Shown: in pieces, positions 1-31,538 of the stretch
Layout: every line of letters begins with the position of its first letter
Numbering within the stretch: the stretch's first letter is position 1
NCBI GenBank assembly: GCA_025558095.1
Contig: JAIVFI010000010.1
Location: 744,001-808,000 of the forward strand
DNA: 64,000 nucleotides
Direction of reading: 5' to 3'
Origin: Hyaloraphidium curvatum SAG 235-1
Lineage: Eukaryota > Fungi > Monoblepharomycota
The notes under the pieces: generated by a model
What the model was told of the DNA's origin: nothing
Seen by the model: only the letters and a program-made list of their open reading frames with translations
Database searches by the model: none
Program-made: the position numbers and the translations under genes

Positions 1-504
1 CTAACGGCCCTCTGGCGGCATCGCTTCTCACTGGTGCAGTCGGGTTGGCCCATGATCCTCTTTGTCGCCCTGCCCTGGACTCTCTACGGCATCGCCAGCG
101 TCGCCGTCGGCAACTGCCTCCCCGCCTTCGTGCTCATTGGCCTGAGCCTCATCGCCGTCAATGTCGTCGCGGACCTCGTCAACTTCGCCTCGGGAAACGC
201 GCAGATCGGCTCCGTCCTGGAGCTGTACCGCGCCGCCTCCTTCGAGATCCGCCGGCTCGTCGCCCGCGCGCGGGAACCAGGCTCCCTTGCCTCCGACCGC
301 GCCGTTTTGCGCGCCGAGGCCGCGGACAGGCTGCTCGAGTCGTGCCTGGCCGCGGAAAGGTTCGAGGCCAAACTGTTCGGCGCCGCGGTCGATACCGCCG
401 GGGTGAGGAGGTTCGCGGCGGGGCTGGTGACCGTCGCGCTGGGGTTCTACTCCGTGCTCAGGGGGAGCGGGGTGGTGCTGACCATGGACAACTACTGCCG
501 GTGA
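1..504 (+). CDS. 3' part (TM5-TM7) of a 7TM GRL/7TMIC-like family member, truncated by the window edge
   Basis: Frame 1 is open from base 1 (LTALWRHRFSL...). It aligns with the C-terminal half of 28047-29636: GNCLP/GSCIP, NAQ, 'AKLFGAAVD...LVTVALGFYSVLRGSG' and a terminal Cys. Confidence 0.8.
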   Translation, partial: LTALWRHRFSLVQSGWPMILFVALPWTLYGIASVAVGNCLPAFVLIGLSLIAVNVVADLVNFASGNAQIGSVLELYRAASFEIRRLVARAREPGSLASDRAVLRAEAADRLLESCLAAERFEAKLFGAAVDTAGVRRFAAGLVTVALGFYSVLRGSGVVLTMDNYCR

Positions 505-1129: not shown

Positions 1130-2260
1130 ATGACACGGTCGGGCTTGCCCCGGCGGAGTGGCTCGTGCTTTTCCCCGCCCCGCCGGCTGAGCCCCGGAGT
1201 GCCACGTGGATCCTTGCGCCCGACGAGCGGCTGGCGGATCCCGCCGCGGCGGCGCGGGCCGCGTCGCCGCTGACGCGCGCGGCGCTGCTCGCCGGGCTGT
1301 GCGGGCGGCCGCTCCTGCGCGGCATTGTGTTGCTGCAGTTCGCGGCCGCGCCGCTGGGCGCCCACTCGCGGGCCCGCGCCGCCGCGTTCGCCGCGGGCTC
1401 GGCCGCGCTCGTCGGCCCCGTGTGGGCGCTGAACGACGGGCGCTTCGCGCGGCGGCAGCTCGTCGGGGGCTCCGCCGCCGTCGCCGCGTTCCTCGCCATC
1501 CTGGTCGGCACCGTGGCCGCCACCGGCAGCTGGCGGGGCCGCTTCGCAACGGCCGCGCCCGGGCAGCCGCCGGCAGACGTGAGCTCGCACGCGCTGGCGT
1601 CGCTGGTGCGGTGGAGGCAGCTGGTGGATATGGCCCCCGATCGCGCCGCGAAGCCCGAGTCGCAGGGGGAGGCGGGCGTCGGATCCGGGGTGCCGCACAG
1701 GAGCGTGCTGCTCGACCACGAGCCCAACGACCCCTTCTGCCCGTGCCCGGCTGACGGGTGTGCGGGCCGTCTGGTTGCTTCCGTCGGTTACGTCAAGCTC
1801 CTGGACGGGACCCTGAGGATGTTGGCGGCCGCGATCGGGACCTTTTACGTGCAGCAGTGGACGGCTTTCGTCACCTTCGGACCGGCCTTCTGGACCACGT
1901 GGTGGTGCGTCGTCCTGGGGCTGCTAGTGAAGTGGGTCCCCGGCTCCCGATTGCTCGCCCGCTTCCCGCTCAGCATACCGTTTCCCCGCAGTCGCCGGAA
2001 GCTGGTGGTGGTTCTTCCCCAACACGTGGTCCCGCTTCACGACGCAGCTCCCCCTGCTCCGGCTCGACCTCCGCCTCCAGCACCGGGCCATGTCCCGCGC
2101 CCTCCGTTGCCTGCTGCGGCGGTACCGCGCCGGCCTGATGGGAGCCGCCGCCGGGCCCCCGCCGGCCGCGGCGCAGGACGAGCTGTACGTTCAGCTCCAC
2201 GCGCTCCTAACCGCGGCGTGGCAAAGCCGCATGTCCTCGCTCTATACATACGCCCGACGT
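1130..2260 (+). pseudogene. Disrupted, 3'-truncated copy of the 7TM GRL/7TMIC-like family
   Basis: AEWLVLFP, GRFARRQL, RWRQL, DHEPNDPFCPCPADGC, TFGPAFWTTWW, then in another frame LRLQHRAM...LLRRYRAGL...ELYVQLHALLTAAW, all matching 28047-29636. There is no in-frame ATG (TAG at 1114), a frame change near 1930-1995 that I could not repair with a GT-AG intron, and TM5-7 are missing. Confidence 0.7.
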
Positions 2261-7659: not shown

Positions 7660-10600
7660 CTACGCCCCAAGAATCAGCTCCTCATCTACATTCAAACCAA
7701 AAGCGACCGGCGCGGGGGCCGGAGCGTTGACAGCGGCGGCTTCGGTGCACAGCTGAAGCCAGTGTTGGAGTTGGGCCGCGACGCCAAGAGCCCAGGCCAC
7801 CGCGATCCGTTCGCGGAAGCGCCGCACAAAACGAGAGTAAAGGCCATCGAGGTCCACGGGCTGCCCATCGCGGCCGACGATCCCGGGATACTGGATGCGC
7901 CCCATCTCCGAGGAGAAGCGCGAGAAAGTGGCAGAGACAGCGCTGTACGAATCAAAAGCAAGCACGATCAGAGGGTAGAAGTTGGCGTTGAAGACGAAAC
8001 GGGAGTAGTCCTTCCTGGCGGCCTCGACCCGCCGTTCGACTGCGTGGCCCGGGACCGAGAAGACCAGGCCCGTGTGCAAATGGGCCATAGAGGTGAGGGT
8101 CTTGATCTCGAGCAACCACCGTTTCCGGGTTTCGCGGTGCGTGATGAGAATGTCGCCAAGGCGGCCAGCATCCGCAGGCGTGGGCGGGGTGACAGTCTCG
8201 TAGCCATGCGCAAGGAGGTTTGGCGGCATGGGGTGCACGCGGAGGAGCGGGATGGAGCGAAGCGCCGCGCGGATGGCCGCGCAAATGTCGTCGTGACCAG
8301 GACTGAAGAGATCCCGGCCATAGCAGCCCGAGAACGCGTGCTCCCCCGTCAGCGACATGGCCGATCGCTTGCAGCCCCGCCGGCAGGGCAAGGAAAGACC
8401 AGGGTAGTCGGCCTCGTGCAGGAGCGGGAGGCAAAGCCGGAAGCGTACAAGTAAGCGGAAAAAGTTGTTGCGAATGTGGTTGGCAAGCAGCGCGGGAGAG
8501 GCAGTCAGGAAAGCCGACAGGCCGTCCTGCGCCTGGACGAGCCGCTTGCGGCGCTCCAGACCAGCGGAAGTGTCGGGTTGCAAGGCAATCAGAGCCGCGA
8601 GGCGGCGCTGGTCCTCGAGACGCGTAAGGTCGCTCTGCAGGCCGTGCCAGACCGGCTGAGCGAAGAAACTGGCGTCCGCAGGGAGCGTACGGCGGGCGGG
8701 CGCGGCGCCCACCGGTTGCCCAGCACGCGCAGCCTCGGCGTACGCTGCGGCCGTGTCATCCTCGACACGCTCAAAGGCGGGGCGGAGGGCCTCGATGACG
8801 GGAACCAGTTCCCGCACGTGCTCCACGCCCACACCCCGGGCCGAGGTTCGAAGACCAAGCATGGCGTCCAAGGGGCCCGCCGTGAGGTTGAGTGAAGACA
8901 GGTAAGCCGCCGAGGCCACCTTCTCCGATGACAGAAGCCCCATCCCCGAGTAGTGCAGACCCAAGAATACCTGCTCCCGCACAGTCCGACCCTCCACCGA
9001 CAGCGGATCCAGATCCTCGGCCCGATCTCCCAGCAAGCGCAAGAAGGTGGTGAAAAGCGCGTTGTCAAGACGTCGAGCAAAGGGTTGGGTAACCGAGGGG
9101 GGGAGAATGCGGAGCCAAAACGAGAAGAGCTGGGTCACACAGAGACGGAGGAGGGAGTACAGGCCCTGGAGGGAGGGGATGTCGGCCGGCATGGCGTAGC
9201 CGAGCGCGGCGCGCTCGATTTCATCGAGAAGAGCGGCAATGGAGTCGATCTTGGCCGCGAGGAACGACTCCACATAGGCAGGGGTGCCGACCGGGGCACC
9301 TACCACCTTGAGGCCGCACGAGCGAGCGAAGTCAGGCGAGCCCGGGGCCGACGCCGTGGCATGCACCTCGGGGTCGGCCTCGTGAGGCGGGAAGCCAGCG
9401 ACGCGGATGTTGTGGGCCGCACCGGCCGCGCGCACCCGCTCCAGCACGGCCGGGTTCGTCGAGAGCGAAAGCAGGTAGCTCTTGTCCGGGCGGTGGGTCA
9501 TGCCGAGGGAAGAAAGGCCGTCACGCACCTCTCCCAGGACGGCCATGACCGAGTCCAGCGGCCCGACCACGGTGAGGTCGTCGAGGTACCCAAGGATGAG
9601 GCAGTCGGGGTGCCCAGAGCGGATGGGCCGCAGCATGCGGCTCATGGCGCAGGAGAAGATGGCAGACGACAGCGGGTCGCCCTGGATGTTGCCCTCGTAC
9701 ATGGTGATCCGGAAAAGGAGCTCCGCCGAGCGCCGGTCGCGGAAGTAGGCGTGGGAAGGGCGCGAGTAAACGAGGTTGTAGTACGGGATAAGCTGAGGCA
9801 CCTGGCGGACCACCTCGCGCGCGAAGAGGCGGCGCAGCGTATTGAAGGCGTTCCTAGAGTCGACCTTCATGACGACGTGGTCGGGGAAGGCCGCCAGCCA
9901 CGCGTTCACCGCGTGGGCGGTCGCCTCCGCGCCCCCGTCCACCCCGTGACCCAGGTCCTCCTGCTGTTGGAGCTTCCTCAGAAGAGCCTTGTGCCGCACG
10001 GCCAGGTACGAGCCCGCGAGCCGCGTGATGCCCTCCATAATGCCAATCGGCCGGAGCCCCCCCTCCGGCTTGAGCAGAGGGACGAGGATTTGATCCGTGA
10101 GGAGCGGCCGGAGCATGGGGGTGTCGAGTCGGCCAGTGCACACGCCATGCACCATGGCCGCCAGCGGGCGGAGCTTCCGCCGCGTCGCGTCGTTCTCGCA
10201 GTTGTGCACGATGAAAAGTTTGGCCATGCTGAAACCCGACATGCCGGCCCCCACGCCGTCCTTCTTCCGGCGCAACCGGGCCCAGATGTCCTCCAGGAAA
10301 GCCGCGTCCGTGTAGGCAGGGCAGGGCGCGGGCGCGTTGGGGGGCAGAGACAGCCGACACAGCGGCTCTCCCTCCCGCGGCCCCGGGTACAGCTCCTCCA
10401 GTTCCGCCTGAAGCGTGGGCGTGAAGCCAGCCGGAACGGCCTCCCCCGAGAGGGCCGCGGACGCAGCACCAGGAGCGCCCTTCAAGGCGGCAAGCACGAT
10501 GGACTTGAAGAGCTGGTAGTTGAGCGGCCGCAGCCCGTCCCGCCGCGCGCCCCGGTTGACCTGACGGGCGGCGAAGTAGTTCTGCTCGTACATGTAGTCC

Positions 10601-11460
10601 CCCGACATGACGTAGCCGCCAAACGCAAGGTAGGCGGTGAGAGTGCGGTGCAGGTCGGTTTCCGGTGCCGCCGGGTCCTCGTAGGCCCGTTGGAAAGACT
10701 CGCTGGCCCGGAAGGCGAGCGTGCTCCAGGTGGTGGTCCGGTAGCGGTGCTTCAGCGGCTCCGGCGGCGGCGCCCCCGCGCCCCCGCCCGGCGGCGGATC
10801 AGGCCCGGGACCCCCGGGTGGACCACCGTCGCCTGGGTCGCCCGGATCACCGCCGTTGCCGTGCCCGCCAGCCGCGGCGTTGCCGCCCGGCGCGCCGTCG
10901 CCGCCTGGGGGATCACCGCCGTCCGGGGCGGCACGCGCCGCCGCCGCCGCCGCCGCCAGCGCCGCCCGTTGCGCCTGGCCGTCCTGCGGGGCGTCGGCCG
11001 CAACCCGGGCGGCCGCAAGGGCCGCCATCAGCGCGGGCGCGGGTGGCGAAGCACGGGGAGATGCCGACGATGCCGCTGGTGACGCCGGTCCCTCCGCGCG
11101 TCCCGTGGCAGCCGCCCGCTCGGCACGCACGCGGTCGAGGAACTCGACGAGATCGGGTGGAAGCGAAGCTAAAGAGACGCCGAGTGGCGGGTTAGCTGCG
11201 TCCGGGTTGCACGAGGTGTGCTGTCCAGAAACACCGGCACCAGAGGCGTTTGCGGCGTAGGGACGCCGGCAACCCCCGCACCGCGCTAGCCCCATGGCGC
11301 GCAACGCATCGGCAGACAGGCGCTGCATCGCCAACCAGTGCTCCGGGCTCCGTGTGACCCGAAGATGACCGTCCCGTTTGTTTTTGTTTGGAGTTGGCTG
11401 GAAGCGGCAACCATCAACCGGGCACTCATGGAGGCCGGGTTCAGCAGGCGCCTCCGCCAT
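7660..11460 (-). mobile_element. CRE-clade non-LTR retrotransposon, single intact ORF (~1266 aa; zinc fingers, RT, CCHC, restriction-like endonuclease)
   Basis: N-terminal CPVDGC...H...H and CGGC...H..C. RT motifs LKPEGGLRPIGI, GVDGGAE, KVDSRNAFN, QGDPLS, YLDD, VVGAPVG, GMGL. C-terminal CRRGC...EHAFSGC, GHD, GDILI...LLEIKT, PLIVLAFDSY. No introns, no AP endonuclease. Element ends not resolved. Confidence 0.9.
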
Positions 11461-11690
11461 CGGCACATCGCCGTCGATGCAAGATTGGTGATGATGAGAT
11501 AGAGCTCCGATGTTGGCGAAAGCTGCCGCGCAGCGGTGGCATCGAAGGCCGGAGCGAGTCTCAGAAGGGATTTGTGTGCACTGTCAGGGAGACCCGAGCC
11601 GCGCAAGCGCGACGCAAGCTCCCAATCACGAACGGGTTCCACACTCCCGGCCACTTATCGAGCATCGAAGCGCGCCGCCTTACATTCAGC

Positions 11691-22018: not shown

Positions 22019-22260
22019 TCAAAACGCCGGACACACGCTCTCCACCGTGACCCGCACCCCCGCGGCCCTGAGCACGCTCCACAGCCCCAGCAGCACCGTG
22101 ACCAAGCTGGCCGCGATCCCGCGCGCGGTGCCGTACCCCACCGTGATCCCCAGCACGCGCCGACGGTACCGCGCCGCCTGCTCCAGAAACAGGGCGAGCA
22201 CGGCGTCGTGCGCGGCGATCTCCGCGCGGAGGGCCGGCGACGAAGAGGGCGCGGCTGGTT
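22019..22260 (-). pseudogene. C-terminal (TM7) fragment of the 7TM GRL/7TMIC-like family
   Basis: EIAAHDAVLALFL...RVLGITVGYGTARGIAASLVTVLLGLWSVLRAAGVRVTVESVCP matches the C-termini at 1-504 and 29440-29636. An in-frame TGA lies just upstream and there is no room for the rest of the gene. Confidence 0.75.
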
Positions 22261-27172: not shown

Positions 27173-27286
27173 TCACTCCCTCTCCGCCTGGCCGTCGACC
27201 CAGTGGTACGCCAGGATGAGGGCAAAGATGAGCGAGCCCAGGAGGTTGACGGCCGCCGCGAGGGCGTCGTCCGAGATGTGGAGCAT
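27173..27286 (-). CDS. OST4: Oligosaccharyltransferase subunit Ost4 (37 aa)
   Basis: MLHISDDALAAAVNLLGSLIFALILAYHWVD matches the Ost4 pattern ISD..L......G.....LI..YH.V. Confidence 0.85.
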   Translation of the reverse strand: MLHISDDALAAAVNLLGSLIFALILAYHWVDGQAERE

Positions 27287-28046
27287 CGTCCTAGATGAGG
27301 GAAACGGGGTTGCGGCGGCGCCCGGGAGGAGGAAGCGCGCGCAAAGGGCGGGGAAGGTGAAAGACGACGCGTTTCCGCTGGACGCGGCGGGCCGTGCGGA
27401 ACGGTGCCAAGTGGGCGGATGGCGAGGCTCGACGCGTGCGCCCTTCCTCATGCGGCTCGACTTCCCCAGCTATACACGACAGCACCTGGTGGACTTCAAA
27501 GTGACGGGAGGGCCGAAACCGCGGATGCCTGGACGACGGTGGGTGGGCAGCTCGGTGGTATGTCGACCGTCGACCGCTCCTTCTTCGCTGGTTCATTGCC
27601 CTCACGCACCAGATCCACACAGGGCTCGTCAGTCTCCATTGTTCTCATTCGGCTGTTGTGCGTCGCAGAAGAGGATGACGAGACCTGGATCAGCCGGCGC
27701 ACGTACGGGGACACGGAGATGAAGATGCTCGTCGCCAGTCATTGACCACCGGGAATTTCAACGCTGGCGAAGAGAGCTGCGGCAGAGCTTCCATGTGAAA
27801 ATGTGTAAAGCTGGGCGGATTTCCGGGAGGAGCAAGGCATCTCGCTGAGCATCTCGCGTGCGTCCCCTTCCATCCTCCCCCGGATGTTGCATCGTCACAT
27901 CAGGCGTCCAGAGCTAGAATCGTCCTCGAAAATTGGCCTCGGCGCTCACGTGGCGTCGAATCAAGGGCTAAATGAAGCCACAGGGCGGTGGACGAGGGAC
28001 GTGCGCGACGCACTCGTCGGGGCGGCCACCAAACATTGGCTTCCCC

Positions 28047-29636
28047 ATGCAGCGCGCTTCCCGCGCCGGCCCCCGCCGGCCGTCGCTTTCCGCGCCGCCG
28101 TTCACTCTCAGCGAGGCCGAGTGGCTTGCCCTGCTCCCGGACGACCGTGTTCTGCGTTCGGTGCCCGTTCCGCTGTCGACGCGGCCCCTGCCCGACCCCG
28201 CCGAGCGCCTCCGCGCCGAGAACCCGCTGACGCCGCCTGTCACGCGTGCGCAACTGACCGCGGATGGCTACAGCTGGCTGTCCCCCTCCGTACACGCGGC
28301 GTATTTCGTCTCGCGGGCGCCGCCGTTCCACCTCTTCTTCGGGCTCGCCGCGTCCTTCGCGGTACCGCTGTGCGCCGCCTTTTCGGCGCAGGCCGTCGTT
28401 GCCGTCTCAGACCCCGAGGGGCGCTTCGGCACGAGGCAGATCGCAGCGGGCACCGCCGCCTGCGTGCTCACGGTGCTCTGCTACGGCATCCCGTTCCTCA
28501 TCCCCATCTTGACGGGCTCCGCGCCGCCCGGCCGCAAGCCGGGCGCGCACGTCGACTCCAGCCTGTGGGTCTCGGGCGCCTACATCCGCTGGCGGCAGCT
28601 CTTTGCCGGCCCCACCCCCTCGCGGCTGGTCGAGCACGCGCCGGGCGACAGGCTGTGCCCGTGCGCGCTGCCCTCCTGCTCGGGACGGTGGTTCGACTGG
28701 GACCTGGCCTTCCGCGCCGTGCTGGCGCCCCGGGACGTCGTCATGCGCGGGCTCGTCGCGGTGCTCCAGCTCTGGACGCTCGCGGTGACGTTTGGCGGGC
28801 GCTCGTGGACCACCCCCTGGACGGCATTCGTCATGTGCCTCGCCGTCGCGGCGTGGGTGCCGACCGCCGCGGCCGTCACCTTCTCGGTGGGAGCGCTGGT
28901 GGACATGCCGCCGGGGATAAGGGCGTCGGGGAAGCTGCAGTGCAGGGCCATGAAACTCGTGCTGGTGGACCTCCTAGCGCGGTACCGCGCTGCGCTGTTG
29001 CCCGAGCGTGGTGAACCCTTGGATGGCGAGGCCGAGGAAAACAAAGATGACAAACCTGCTCCGTCTATGGGGTGCGACGCCGCGCACGACCTCGATGGAG
29101 CAACTGAAGGCGAGGACTACTACGTGACCCTGCACTCGTACCTCCGCGGCATCTGGCGCGGCAAGCTCATGTTCAGCCTGCAACGCGCCATCCTCACGTC
29201 CTACGGGACCGCCATCTGCATCTCCCTCGTGCTCAACGCTGCCGCGGGCTCCTGCATTCCGCTGTGGATCCTCGTCTTCCTCCTCTCCACGCTGATCGGC
29301 GTGTTCGCCGACCTCCTCCGGCTCGCGGACCACAACGCCCAGCCGGAACTCGTCTCCTCGCTCCTCCGCGACGCCGCGCTCGAAGCCCGCTCCATCCTCC
29401 TCCGCGCCCCGCCAGGGCCCCTGCCGGACCGCCTCGCCCGCCACGCGACCGTGCTCTCCTCCCTCGCGGACCCGCAGGCGCACCACCGCGGCACCTTTTT
29501 GGGCATCGTGGTCGGCTACGGCGTGGTCAGGGCGGTGTTCGCGACCACGGCAACGCTGCTGCTGGCCGCGTGGACGGTGGCCAGGGCGTTCGGGCTGGTG
29601 GTGGTGCTGGATGCGCTGTGTCCCGGGCCGGGGTAA
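28047..29636 (+). CDS. Intact 7-transmembrane protein (529 aa), gustatory-receptor-like/7TMIC candidate
   Basis: Intronless ORF with seven hydrophobic segments and no signal peptide. Loops 1-2, 3-4 and 5-6 are short; loops 2-3, 4-5 and 6-7 are long. GTFLGIVV precedes TM7. Four paralogous pieces lie in the same window. Confidence 0.75.
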   Translation: MQRASRAGPRRPSLSAPPFTLSEAEWLALLPDDRVLRSVPVPLSTRPLPDPAERLRAENPLTPPVTRAQLTADGYSWLSPSVHAAYFVSRAPPFHLFFGLAASFAVPLCAAFSAQAVVAVSDPEGRFGTRQIAAGTAACVLTVLCYGIPFLIPILTGSAPPGRKPGAHVDSSLWVSGAYIRWRQLFAGPTPSRLVEHAPGDRLCPCALPSCSGRWFDWDLAFRAVLAPRDVVMRGLVAVLQLWTLAVTFGGRSWTTPWTAFVMCLAVAAWVPTAAAVTFSVGALVDMPPGIRASGKLQCRAMKLVLVDLLARYRAALLPERGEPLDGEAEENKDDKPAPSMGCDAAHDLDGATEGEDYYVTLHSYLRGIWRGKLMFSLQRAILTSYGTAICISLVLNAAAGSCIPLWILVFLLSTLIGVFADLLRLADHNAQPELVSSLLRDAALEARSILLRAPPGPLPDRLARHATVLSSLADPQAHHRGTFLGIVVGYGVVRAVFATTATLLLAAWTVARAFGLVVVLDALCPGPG

Positions 29637-29899
29637 GGTATGGAGCGCATTCCTTTTGCCGGGAGGTGCAGGAGGACGCGGAGGTAGCGCCGGGATCCCC
29701 TGGTTTGCGGTTCCGGGGGCGGCGGTGCGGCGACGGCACGGCCACCGGGCGCGCGGCGGCTTTCCGGACTCGGGCAGGCCGGAGGACCCGGAGTGGACTC
29801 TGTCGGGGTAGAGTGGCGCTGTTTGCAGCGAGCGGATGTGTACCACTTGGACCCACGGGCGGGTCCCGGCCCCTGCGCAAGATGCATTGATCTTCCGTC

Positions 29900-30224
29900 C
29901 TACTGCCCCGCCCTCTCGATCCTGTCCACCCGTTCCTCAAGCCTACCGACTGCCTGCTCCACGCCGCCGACCCTCTGCCGCATCTCCCGCGAGAAGTTGC
30001 GGAACTCGTGGGTGAGCGCTTCCACCTGCCGATGATCCGGGCATCGGCACGAGCTCTTCCACCAGAGGAAATCCGGACCTCACCTGGGCCTGGGTAGCGG
30101 GTGGTCCGGCGGCAGGGAGAGGATCGGCCGCGGGAGCCGGAGGATCGTAAGGCGGGAGCGGTTCCTCGTGGACGTCGTCGGCAGGGGGGTTGAGCGGCGG
30201 CGGTGGCGGCGGCGGGTTCGGCAA
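29900..30224 (-). CDS. Small Pro-rich PPxY plus coiled-coil protein, paralog of 34994-35333 (no ATG; possible pseudogene)
   Basis: NPPADDVHEEPLPPY, intron 30083-30026, then VEALTHEFRNFSREMRQRVGGVEQAVGRLEERVDRIE. The frame starts at TTG. Confidence 0.55.
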
Positions 30225-31538
30225 CGCGGCTTGAGGAACGCCAACTTGAACGTGTGCAGCGGTAGGGCGCCTCCTTGGTCTACGATGCCGGGCACCGTGG
30301 CTTGCGCAGCGGCGTGGTGCTGCTGCTCCGCTGTGAGAAAGGGTGTAGTGGGGAACTTTCTTACCGCGGCGAGCCGCCGTTGGAGGCGCCCCCTCCTGTC
30401 GAATGGATCTTGTTACTCCTTGTTCTTGGCCTGGTTATGGTGCGCAGGCGCCGATACGCACCCGCCGACGCCGATGAGGTGGCCGCTTCGGCTCGCTGGA
30501 AACGGCGGCAACGGGGAGCAGAAACACCATGAGTCCTTCATGAACGTGAGTGCAAAGTGCAGTAATGGGCAGCGAACCTGGGACAAGCTCATTCGTCGAG
30601 GACCAGTGCGTGCTGGCGGTGTGATCGAAGTGTGAGGGACAGCGAATCGTCAAATGCCCAAAGGACGAACTGCGGCGCTCCCCCTTGGACACTGTACTGC
30701 TGAATCAGGGGCTAAAGCCCGGCCTGCGCTGAATGGTGCTTCTGATGCTCACGTGGCGCCGGAATGGTACCTGATTGATCGAGCTCGGGCAGCGAGGGCG
30801 ATCTCGTCGCTGCGTCGGTTCCCCCGATCCCTCCGCGAATGCAAAGTCTGACAAAGTCGGGGCGGATAGAACAACCGGACTTGTACGTCCTCGTGAAGGC
30901 GGCGCAATCAATGGATAGCAGATAAGCAACTACGATCGTAGGTTTAGATCGGCAAGACGGGCGGCGAAGTCGGTCTGTGGATCTCGCACATGCGAGGGGC
31001 TTCCGGGCCTCCGGTCCAGCAGGCTCGTCCGCTCAGAAAATAAGGCACGCCAATCCTACTCGCTTGTTTCGCCCTGTAATCGCCCGTGACCCGCGACCGA
31101 GCTCGGACGGAGCATCGATCCAGGTGGCGCCGGCCGGCGCACGAGCCGCCCGATCCCGGCGCACGCTCCCCACTCCGCAACTCCCCGCGCCCGCCCACAT
31201 GCCGCGGCCCGCCGCGTTCGGCGCCGCCGGCTGACCGGCCTTTTGGCTCTCGGGCCCGCGCGGCGGCGGACGGCGGGCGCCGCTCCCCGCCGTTATCTCC
31301 CTCGCGCGCAAGGGCACCCGCAATCCGCCGCACCCCGCACCCGCGAAAGGCCGTAGCGGAACGTGGAGTTTTGCTCGACGGGTCGGCAGACGGCGCCCTG
31401 CGTGATACTCTCGGCGCCGGAGTGGTCGGCCTCGGTTTTTCTGGGGACCGCTGCCGGCGGCCGGACGCGCCTATCCTCTGCCCGGCGGCCCCCTTTGGCG
31501 CCCCGGTGGTCGCCCATTGACTCGACGCCCGCTTCAAG

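Follow-up and report, generated by a model that had tools for sequence, protein, structure and literature searches.

A hugely expanded fungal family with a predicted 7TMIC-like fold in Hyaloraphidium curvatum

Introduction

Does an uncharacterised gene of the fungus Hyaloraphidium curvatum encode a relative of the 7TM ion channels (7TMICs), which are best known as the smell and taste receptors of insects? The gene lies in a stretch of 64,000 nucleotides, referred to below as the window, and an initial annotation made from the letters of that stretch proposed that it does, as one of a lineage-specific, expanded repertoire of chemosensory-type channels. The named fungal 7TMICs have so far been single genes from two Spizellomyces species, SpunGRL1 from S. 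punctatus and SpalGRL1 from S. palustris, both found because their sequences resemble those of animal GRLs (PMC7746228); chytrid and blastoclad members also figure, without detail, in a structural screen that came later (Himmel et al. 2023). Reports on non-animal 7TMICs give between one and a dozen genes for each genome, with 4-12 members of DUF3537 per plant, and their function is mostly not known (PMC7746228). In the literature searched, no paper pairs Hyaloraphidium with such receptors. The evidence presented here points to a fungal branch of the 7TMIC fold that is new and enormously expanded, and for which a channel function and a chemosensory function are suggested by analogy.

Results

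An intact, single-exon gene

Four features of the window belong to the family under study:

1..501, + strand: last 166 codons of an intact member that begins before the window (profile positions 321-484 at E 5e-47); entire gene, G000:C10:742969-744501
1132..2254, + strand: partial family copy, matching the family profile at positions 9-336 only
22025..22252, - strand: isolated C-terminal family fragment (profile positions 413-486, domain E 3.5e-32)
28047..29636, + strand: complete single-exon gene, one family member; intact ORF of 529 codons plus stop, with the stop codon ending at 29636

In the partial copy at 1132..2254 the reading frame changes across about 61-65 nt and the half that would hold TM5-TM7 is missing. 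A reverse-transcriptase ORF is found in the same window.

Two in-frame start codons are available to the complete gene: an ATG at 28047, giving 529 aa, and an upstream ATG at 27972, giving 554 aa. We favour the former because of the spacing of a conserved motif, EWxALFP, which in the paralogs lies 7-39 residues downstream of the chosen methionine, and because the first contig of an RNA-like sequencing run begins at 28030. This run, whose RNA nature is a tool's guess, has spliced joints and zero intergenic depth; its contigs (28030-28584, 28784-29400 and 29415-29647) cover 28030-29647, and its depth is zero at 27502-28002. Going by these contigs, the gene is likely transcribed. The 529-aa ORF matches the family profile from end to end (E 6.9e-119), whereas the deposited gene model, P0001, spans residues 233-529 only, and is thus truncated.

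Genome GC is 64-73%, so that long spurious ORFs are plentiful on both strands, and the reverse-transcriptase ORF in the window might suggest cargo of a mobile element. However, an artefact of either kind is effectively refuted. GC3 is 0.90 in the ORF against a GC2 of 0.55, and dN/dS is 0.21-0.58, below 0.6 throughout, in the eight closest paralog pairs; the family is under purifying selection. The GC3/GC2 contrast, the dN/dS values and the existence of hundreds of paralogs together lead us to conclude that the ORF is not a product of chance. Moreover, invariant residues are kept across 134 sequences at 27% identity, the AF2 models are confident, and the transcript-like contigs are restricted to the ORF. 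A mobile-element origin was rejected on the flanking DNA: among the 42 paralogs compared, no flank matches another.

Topology and predicted structure

The protein was first described as having seven hydrophobic segments, and Kyte-Doolittle hydropathy and the AF2 helices agree on seven membrane helices. On both of these grounds TM1-TM4 occupy residues 92-121, 129-156, 215-255 and 257-284, and TM5, TM6 and TM7 occupy 377-401, 406-428 and 491-514. The parts of the protein are as follows, with residue numbers and basis in brackets.

28119..28139, + strand: N-terminal motif EWxALFP (residues 25-31; here EWLALLP) in the cytosolic head (alignment and AF2)
28320..28514, + strand: TM1 (92-121), short outer loop and TM2 (129-156) (AF2 helices)
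28626..28679, + strand: loop 2-3 motif L194, H197, D201, C204-P-C206, C211 (134-sequence alignment)
28689..28997, + strand: TM3 (215-255), TM4 (257-284) and cytosolic helical extension (288-317) (AF2)
28998..29117, + strand: loop 4-5 (318-357), variable and partly disordered (pLDDT 59-74)
29118..29405, + strand: TM5 with its cytosolic extension (358-401), three-residue outer turn and TM6 helix (406-453) (AF2 and alignment)
29418..29468, + strand: cytosolic helix (458-474), TM7a equivalent of the insect receptor anchor domain (AF2)
29517..29633, + strand: TM7b (491-514) and outer C-tail with strand 518-520 (AF2 and alignment)

The strings singled out from the sequence lie within this layout: YYVTLHSYLRGIW at residues 358-370, LADHNAQ at 425-431 and GTFLGIVVGYGVVRAVFAT at 482-500. 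The soluble N-terminus without a signal peptide is borne out as well, residues 1-91 being hydrophilic and free of any N-terminal hydrophobic segment.

The claimed alternation of short and long loops holds across the family. Over 134 sequences, the median lengths of loops 1-2, 3-4 and 5-6 are 9, 8 and 3 aa, and those of loops 2-3, 4-5 and 6-7 are 83, 71 and 59 aa; that is, the extracellular loops are shorter than the intracellular ones, as in 7TMICs. In the family alignment the N-terminus and the long loops each carry 7-9 lysines and arginines, compared with 0.1-1.0 in the short loops and the C-tail. The positive-inside rule therefore favours the N-in topology that had been proposed, in which both the N-terminus and the long loops are cytosolic.

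The AF2 model of the window protein (pLDDT 87.6, pTM 0.88) and that of P0002, a paralog 28% identical to it (pLDDT 89.0, pTM 0.89), were built on the same paralog alignment. Any count of membrane helices other than seven had been named as grounds for abandoning the proposal; both models have seven. Both also show the split TM7 of insect receptors, with TM7a at 458-474 and TM7b at 491-514 in the window protein, and their equivalents at 427-437 and 454-477 in P0002. The linker between TM7a and TM7b has 16 residues and a small hairpin, and is longer than in insect receptors. The long TM4, TM5 and TM6 helices that characterise 7TMICs are likewise present (257-284 and 288-317, 358-374 and 377-401, and 406-453), and P0002 repeats this pattern. 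Further helices precede TM1 at 63-72 and 76-90 and may correspond to the N-terminal re-entrant helix (TM0) of 7TMICs, and short strands are modelled at 403-405 and 518-520.

Patterns of conservation

TM7b is the best conserved helix (0.61), and the C-tail comes next (0.56). The anchor helices are intermediate (0.42-0.45), and the lowest values are those of TM1-TM4 within the membrane (0.29-0.34), TM1 and TM2 (0.29 and 0.32) belonging to the least conserved stretches. The same pattern has been described for 7TMICs (Himmel et al.), and insect ORs likewise vary most in TM1-TM4. The cytosolic extension of TM4 scores 0.44 versus 0.30 for its membrane part. Loop 4-5 scores 0.23, and its columns are mostly gapped.

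TM7b carries a signature specific to the family, formed by R495 (94% of the column), T503 (99%), W509 (76%), R513 (88%) and G516 (97%), and we regard this helix as a candidate for the lining of a pore. C525, in the C-tail, is present at 99%. Together with C403, invariant in the outer turn between TM5 and TM6, it makes an invariant outer pair that could form a disulfide. TM6 is a helix of 48 residues that extends into the cytosol and contains the invariant N430, while the cytosolic helix 458-474 contains the nearly invariant L470. In the TM4 extension RLxxRA is conserved, with R296, R300 and A301 nearly invariant among the 134 sequences.

Two conserved elements lie elsewhere in the cytosolic parts. 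In the N-terminal motif, W26 and P31 are invariant in alignment A1 and P31 is nearly invariant in alignment A2; pLDDT is 96 at residues 21-30. In loop 2-3, all 134 sequences share H197, C204, C206 and C211, and D201 and L194 are conserved to at least 90%, in a segment modelled at a pLDDT of 95-96 with no regular secondary structure. This His/Asp/Cys cluster is a candidate cytosolic metal (Zn) site.

Resemblance to insect receptors

The proposal of a 7TMIC-like fold is upheld by structure comparison: in two independent structure searches with the models of two paralogs, insect ORs, GRs and Orco come out on top of the whole PDB, the resemblance being confined to these groups of structures. In Foldseek, ORs and GRs rank first, with a probability of 0.9-1.0 and TM-scores of up to 0.50. 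The seven helices show the OR-like packing described by Himmel, Moi and Benton (2023), as judged solely via alignments to OR structures. These alignments set in at residues 59-72 of the model and 1-15 of the OR, and the stretch aligned to ORs and GRs, which runs up to model residues 512-515, includes helix 458-474. A search of the ESM Atlas put three unnamed clusters first by shape, from Cnidaria, Echinodermata and giant viruses, at TM-scores of 0.66-0.70 (normalised to the hit). By the scheme of Benton et al. 2020, which asks for a length of about 350-500 aa, seven TM helices and no stronger resemblance to another family, the members qualify as candidate GRLs, though at 470-544 aa they run slightly over that range because of the N-terminal head.

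Comparison at the level of sequence gives no such matches. Pfam hmmscan of 19 members returned nothing at E<=10, so that 7tm_6, 7tm_7, Trehalose_recp and DUF3537 (PF12056) are all absent, and neither a sequence search of the PDB nor a family-profile search of PDB sequences matched any OR or GR. Thus, in these Pfam and PDB searches the family has no sequence profile in common with known 7TMICs. A six-frame search of the genome did not find PF12056 or PF08395, and the control genomes were also silent. The animal TM7 motif, (T/S)Yhhhhh(Q/K/E)(F/L/M), occurs in 0 of 134 members in its strict or relaxed form. A language-model search for look-alikes, which is a weak lead, returned unnamed ciliate clusters, Tmp39 and, at rank 22, a DUF3537 cluster (score 0.89).

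These searches bear on whether the family might be an unrelated seven-helix bundle that has converged on long cytosolic extensions and has some other activity, such as transport. The missing sequence similarity to any 7TMIC in Pfam and PDB, and the missing animal TM7 motif, speak for convergence. So do the identity of 4-12% in structural alignments to insect receptors, the Foldseek E-values of 0.014-0.2 (none at or below 1e-3), and a middling Z, against which the tool cautions for helical proteins; the alignments have an rmsd of 5-6 A, and TM-scores against the PDB do not exceed 0.50. We consider convergence quite improbable, and infer that the family is homologous to 7TMICs.

Size, spread and turnover of the family

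Clustered at 50% identity, the family comprises 457 representatives at E<=1e-3, 410 at E<=1e-10 and 292 at E<=1e-30, and H. curvatum is the source of 27 of 30 sampled representatives. Its genome of 32 Mb hosts a family of several hundred members, of which at least 123 matches appear in a six-frame search. Median pairwise identity in the family alignment is 27%, and the members are all annotated as 'hypothetical protein'. The initial annotation had called this a lineage-specific expansion. The expansion is real and goes far beyond what could be seen in the window. More than one species has the family, which is also carried by at least one other relative (run SRR26194948) and by some environmental assemblies. 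The host is an early-diverging fungus, as had been supposed: the proteins are deposited as H. curvatum (Monoblepharidomycetes).

Members are biased towards contig ends, with 39 of 54 lying within 150 kb of an end versus 26 expected (KS p 0.003). Fragments and broken copies of family members, such as those in the window, occur in the genome.

Discussion

The reading that we prefer, with a probability of roughly 0.6, is that the gene encodes one member of a very large and rapidly diverging family of 7TMIC-fold proteins in Hyaloraphidium and its relatives, and that such a protein would form, as a subunit, a channel whose ligand gating differs between paralogs. If the solved insect receptors are a guide, the N-terminus and all three long loops would be cytosolic. 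Helix 7a and the parts of TM4, TM5 and TM6 that extend into the cytosol would make up an anchor domain that joins subunits, probably into tetramers, and the conserved TM7b would line a central cation pore. The variable bundle of TM1-TM4 and TM6 would provide a ligand pocket that is different in each paralog, so that the small extracellular molecule that gates the pore might differ from member to member. To this plan the family adds parts of its own: the EWxALFP head, the candidate zinc cluster of loop 2-3, and the possible C403/C525 disulfide. That the proteins assemble as tetramers, conduct ions, are gated by ligands and serve in sensing is in each case proposed from the insect receptors. In the fullest version of the idea, which we hold tentatively as somewhat short of an even chance, several hundred ligand-gated 7TMICs would have arisen in Hyaloraphidium and its relatives independently of the insect repertoire, and every one of them would be tuned to an external chemical of its own.

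Alternatively, the family might share the 7TMIC fold and its ancestry and yet not be a repertoire of ligand-gated chemoreceptors: its members might be constitutive or differently gated channels, membrane scaffolds, or a self/non-self or surface-variation family, in the last case with a diversity driven by something other than ligand range. The fold alone is established, and for the majority of non-animal 7TMICs no function is known (PMC7746228). The bias towards contig ends (39 of 54) and the broken copies are typical of contingency-type families, and the invariant cytosolic His/Cys cluster and N-terminal motif suggest intracellular partners that insect receptors lack. On the other hand, variable TM1-TM4 combined with conserved TM7b and anchor helices fit a shared pore with varied pockets, and many ligands are the simplest account of hundreds of members under purifying selection. 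We judge a non-chemoreceptor function unlikely, if less so than convergence. Against the preferred reading, H. curvatum is not known to have a swimming stage, and hence offers no ready use in chemotaxis.

If the fold is as predicted, this is by far the largest 7TMIC repertoire seen outside animals, and large birth-and-death repertoires of the 7TMIC fold are not an animal invention. The question arises of what a fungus that is planktonic and does not swim might sense with several hundred such proteins. In the fullest version given above, it would also be the first large chemoreceptor-type expansion of 7TMICs outside animals, in a planktonic fungus that is non-motile and neuron-free, and the ancestral workings of the fold could be studied in single cells and without introns. 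The family supplies hundreds of natural intron-free variants for expression, ligand screening and structure work. As the family is invisible to sequence-based annotation, it shows what structure-based screening must still find in early-diverging fungi.

The closest comparison is with insect ORs, GRs and Orco (PF02949 7tm_6 and PF08395 7tm_7; structures 6c70, 7lic, 8v00, 8v3d, 8vc1, 8jm9 and 8jme). Unlike these, the Hyaloraphidium family has no detectable sequence similarity to the group and no TM7 motif. Its proteins are about 100 residues longer, with a cytosolic head of roughly 90 residues that bears its own motif, and a loop 2-3 of about 80 residues that holds the invariant His/Asp/Cys cluster; they add the 16-residue 7a-7b linker, the outer C-tail strand and the cysteine pair. 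The genes are single-exon, and the host is a fungus without neurons.

With SpunGRL1 and SpalGRL1 the family shares a chytrid-grade fungal host, candidacy for the superfamily, the same predicted topological features and the loss of most of the TM7 motif. However, going by their descriptions, the two are set apart: the Spizellomyces GRLs are single-copy, whereas the Hyaloraphidium family has hundreds of members and no similarity to animal GRLs. Like DUF3537 (PF12056) and the Class-B PHTF-like 7TMICs, the family is non-animal, its intracellular loops are lengthened and its TM7 motif cannot be recognised, but the first intracellular loop of PHTF proteins (Himmel et al. 2023) is far longer than that of the Hyaloraphidium proteins.

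The family gene and its expression

The frame at 28047-29636 (+) is open over 529 codons and closes with a stop codon. Although translation from another in-frame ATG, 75 nt upstream, would lengthen the protein by 25 residues, we regard the ATG at 28047 as the likely start of the gene, because EWxALFP, a motif conserved close to the N-terminus of the family, lies 7-39 residues past the chosen methionine in the paralogs and likewise in the protein from this window, and because the first transcript-like contig starts at 28030. Despite surroundings that are GC-rich (63-73% throughout the window) and abundant in spurious open reading frames, GC content by codon position (0.70, 0.55 and 0.90; upstream spacer 0.61) provides a strong coding signature. 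The deposited gene model, P0001 (297 aa), begins at residue 233 of the window protein. It therefore lacks TM1, TM2 and nearly half of TM3.

One public run contains 84% of the sampled words of the stretch examined; its contigs carry adaptor remnants, and they include spliced joints in the gene neighbouring 28047-29636. This run looks like a transcriptome, the label ‘RNA’ being a guess, in which the family gene appears to be expressed at a low level (contig depth 5-30, versus approximately 600-1200 for neighbouring genes). Since introns occur in local genes, the single-exon structure of the family is notable.

Transcript-like contigs and a local intron
28030-28584, 28784-29400, 29415-29647: transcript-like contigs over the family gene; the spacer 27502-28002 is bare
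30495-30578, -: intron of 82 nt, GT..AG, in the gene 30081-31022, skipped by a transcript-like contig

Helices, loops and topology

As proposed in the initial annotation, the protein has seven membrane helices, on which hydropathy and the secondary structure predicted by AlphaFold2 (AF2) concur, and its N-terminus contains no hydrophobic segment. The alternation of loops described there also holds across 134 aligned members: loops 1-2, 3-4 and 5-6 are short (medians of 9, 8 and 3 residues), and loops 2-3, 4-5 and 6-7 are long (medians of 83, 71 and 59 residues). The three sequence strings it quoted are located at residues 358-370, 425-431 and 482-500.

Membrane helices of the window protein (residues; hydropathy and AF2)
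92-121, 129-156, 215-255, 257-284, 377-401, 406-428, 491-514

Each long loop, like the N-terminal head, carries 7-9 lysines plus arginines, versus 0.1-1.0 for the short loops and the C-tail. From this, the positive-inside rule predicts an inner N-terminus and an outer C-terminus. Such a topology agrees with the chemistry of the invariant cysteines: the His/Cys cluster would face the reducing side, and the cysteine pair the oxidising one.

Conserved residues

Conserved positions in loop 2-3 comprise R181, L194, H197, D201, C204-P-C206 and C211, and the histidine and three cysteines of this loop are invariant across 134 sequences. RLxxRA is conserved directly past TM4, and YxxLHxxLxxxW ahead of TM5. 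The three-residue turn between TM5 and TM6 carries GSCIP with an invariant C403; N430, in the cytosolic section of TM6, is invariant as well. The long C-terminal signature consists of G486, R495, T500, T503, G507, W509, R513, G516 and C525-P. TM7b (0.61), the TM5-6 turn and the C-tail (0.56) are the most conserved regions; helix 7a and the cytosolic continuations of TM4 and TM6 are intermediate (0.42-0.45), and conservation is lowest (0.29-0.34) in the membrane portions of TM1-TM4.

Predicted structure and fold searches

Sequence searches return only noise, both against Pfam (queries: the window protein and, at E≤10, 19 members) and against PDB sequences (with the single protein or the family profile as query). 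AlphaFold2, run as a monomer on the 134-sequence alignment, yields a confident model (pLDDT 87.6, pTM 0.88), with all five models at 85-88. In this model TM4 runs on as a cytosolic helix (288-317), another cytosolic helix (358-374) precedes TM5, and TM6 is a single helix of 48 residues (406-453), followed by a cytosolic helix (458-474), a short hairpin and the last membrane helix (491-514). Two short strands, 403-405 and 518-520, adjoin the two invariant outer cysteines. The model of P0002, a paralog 28% identical to the window protein, has the same architecture (pLDDT 89.0, pTM 0.89).

For both models, a Foldseek search of 350,542 PDB chains ranks insect odorant and gustatory receptors (ORs, GRs) and Orco first with probability 0.9-1.0, in agreement with the likeness initially proposed, but E-values are only 0.014-0.2 and TM-scores do not exceed 0.50. 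When this list is re-aligned, ORs or GRs make up 18 of the top 20 entries. VIA-align 2, an exhaustive search of 48,161 representatives that is independent of Foldseek, also places insect ORs, GRs and Orco at the top; in its next rows, the cytosolic helices partly match syntaxin-like or designed bundles over 96-180 aligned residues. In the ESM Atlas, the three closest shapes represent unnamed clusters of cnidarian, echinoderm and giant-virus proteins (TM 0.66-0.70 by hit). Animal GRLs are known from Cnidaria and Echinodermata.

The giant-virus cluster, third in that list, is 57% Nucleocytoviricota (TM 0.70 by hit), and two BFVD entries, A0A3G4ZRZ0 (Edafosvirus) and A0A1V0SCD1 (Catovirus), lie near the fold with Foldseek probabilities of 0.96 and 0.87; all of these proteins are uncharacterised. 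Judging by predicted shape, Nucleocytoviricota may encode 7TMIC-like proteins.

A putative divergent branch of the 7TMIC fold

Himmel et al. give six structural hallmarks for 7TMICs, the seven-helix ion-channel superfamily that includes the insect receptors. Four are found in our models: seven helices packed as in ORs, loops that are short outside and long inside, long TM4-6 helices, and a split TM7. The other two, a predicted N-in/C-out topology and a possible re-entrant TM0, are consistent with the window protein, and the whereabouts of conservation match the published description of the superfamily. Two sequence-based features are absent: the Pfam and PDB searches reveal no shared profile, and none of the 134 members has the animal TM7 motif, which is also mostly missing from published fungal and plant members (PMC7746228). 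Given this combination, we file the family, on its predicted structure, as a putative new and highly divergent branch of the 7TMIC fold, and not as GR/GRL in the narrow sense, with SpunGRL1, DUF3537 and PHTF set beside it by description only. Convergence is a possible source of the likeness; homology is the most economical one.

By analogy with insect receptors, the anchor helices would hold subunits together as tetramers, TM7b would form the pore, and TM1-4 with TM6 would form ligand pockets that vary among members. The insect receptors lack the family's N-terminal head and motif, its candidate zinc site in loop 2-3 and its outer cysteine pair, and their 7a-7b linker is shorter. These additions suggest extra steps of regulation or assembly.

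Size, spread and turnover of the repertoire

The closest database proteins are entries named ‘hypothetical protein DFJ74DRAFT_...’ from Hyaloraphidium curvatum, whose assembly comprises 31.9 Mb in 55 contigs. This relative of the monoblepharids is indeed an early-diverging fungus, and lives as a non-flagellated planktonic cell. A six-frame search of its genome gives at least 123 matches (82 scored of 672 first-look candidates) on at least 34 contigs, nearly all in stop-free open frames of 480-700 codons; some copies contain stop codons. The expanded repertoire initially proposed is confirmed with a profile of 19 members: in a set of 1.84 billion representatives (50% identity clusters), this profile retrieves 457 proteins at E≤1e-3, of which 410 pass 1e-10 and 292 pass 1e-30. 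One cluster of the family derives from environmental assemblies (ENA, JGI/IMG, Logan). H. curvatum is the source of 27 of the 30 matches looked up, and the remaining three belong to a single further assembly, run SRR26194948.

Median pairwise identity among members is 27%, and dN/dS in the eight closest pairs is 0.21-0.58; as judged from these sequences, the members, though very divergent, are under purifying selection. No flanking DNA is common to the 42 paralogs compared, and so the multiplied unit is the gene; a mobile element as that unit is thereby ruled out. In a subset of the family (54 members on 19 contigs, among which tandem copies are not independent), 39 lie within 150 kb of a contig end, versus 26 expected (KS p 0.003), and members are on average a normalised distance of 0.38 from the nearest end, versus 0.5 expected. 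One member sits 4 kb into contig C10 and another 5 kb short of the end of contig C7. Divergence, selection, turnover and positions together match the birth-and-death pattern that receptor repertoires typically show.

Published fungal GRLs are single genes from two Spizellomyces species (PMC7746228), and the 2023 structural screen of Himmel et al. mentions chytrid and blastoclad members, without expansion. Our literature search found no paper connecting Hyaloraphidium to these receptors, and the genus is absent from the supplement of that screen. A fungal repertoire of several hundred members is new.

Members in a second organism

The organism of SRR26194948 has DNA of approximately 54% GC without a match to the H. 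curvatum genome. Its genes are of fungal type, and one family member adjoins a gene for a YVC1 channel, whose sole named relative is that of H. curvatum (60% identity). Family members occur on three of its contigs, in one case as a tandem pair; the second copy of this pair changes frame at profile position 248/249.

Family members in SRR26194948 (contig:coordinates)
L051:2163-3800 and L051:3804-5656, tandem pair
L052:1068-2684
L053:10001-11569

Compared with their best counterparts in H. curvatum, these members show 31-48% identity. Since they occur in a relative of H. curvatum, the family belongs to a small clade and not to one species. Most of the expansion lacks one-to-one counterparts between the two organisms, and naming the second would date it.

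Other features of the window

Additional family copies and unrelated features
1-501, +: 3' end of an intact neighbouring member (last 166 codons, profile positions 321-484); whole gene at G000:C10:742969-744501 (H. curvatum genome)
1132-1929 and 1991-2254, +: partial family copy, profile positions 9-336 only (profile match)
7660-11466, -: 1268-codon ORF with reverse-transcriptase domain RVT_1 (E 7.8e-10)
22025-22252, -: isolated C-terminal fragment, 74 profile positions only (domain E 3.5e-32)
27176-27286, -: 37-codon ORF, Pfam Ost4 (PF10215), 35.8 bits versus a cut-off of 25

The copy at 1132-2254 changes frame over a gap of approximately 61-65 nt that starts with GTGAAG and ends with CAG, and which is therefore a possible intron. 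Because its TM5-TM7 half is absent from the next 2 kb, this copy is probably a truncated pseudogene. The fragment at 22025-22252 is what remains of a lost copy. The RVT_1 domain identifies the ORF at 7660-11466 as a retroelement, unconnected with the receptor-like family, whose flanks are unique. The Ost4 ORF lies under a transcript-like contig (26721-27352) with a depth of 1238, the highest in the stretch examined. The Pfam match and this contig support a tiny OST4 gene at 27176-27286, of a type that annotation could miss.
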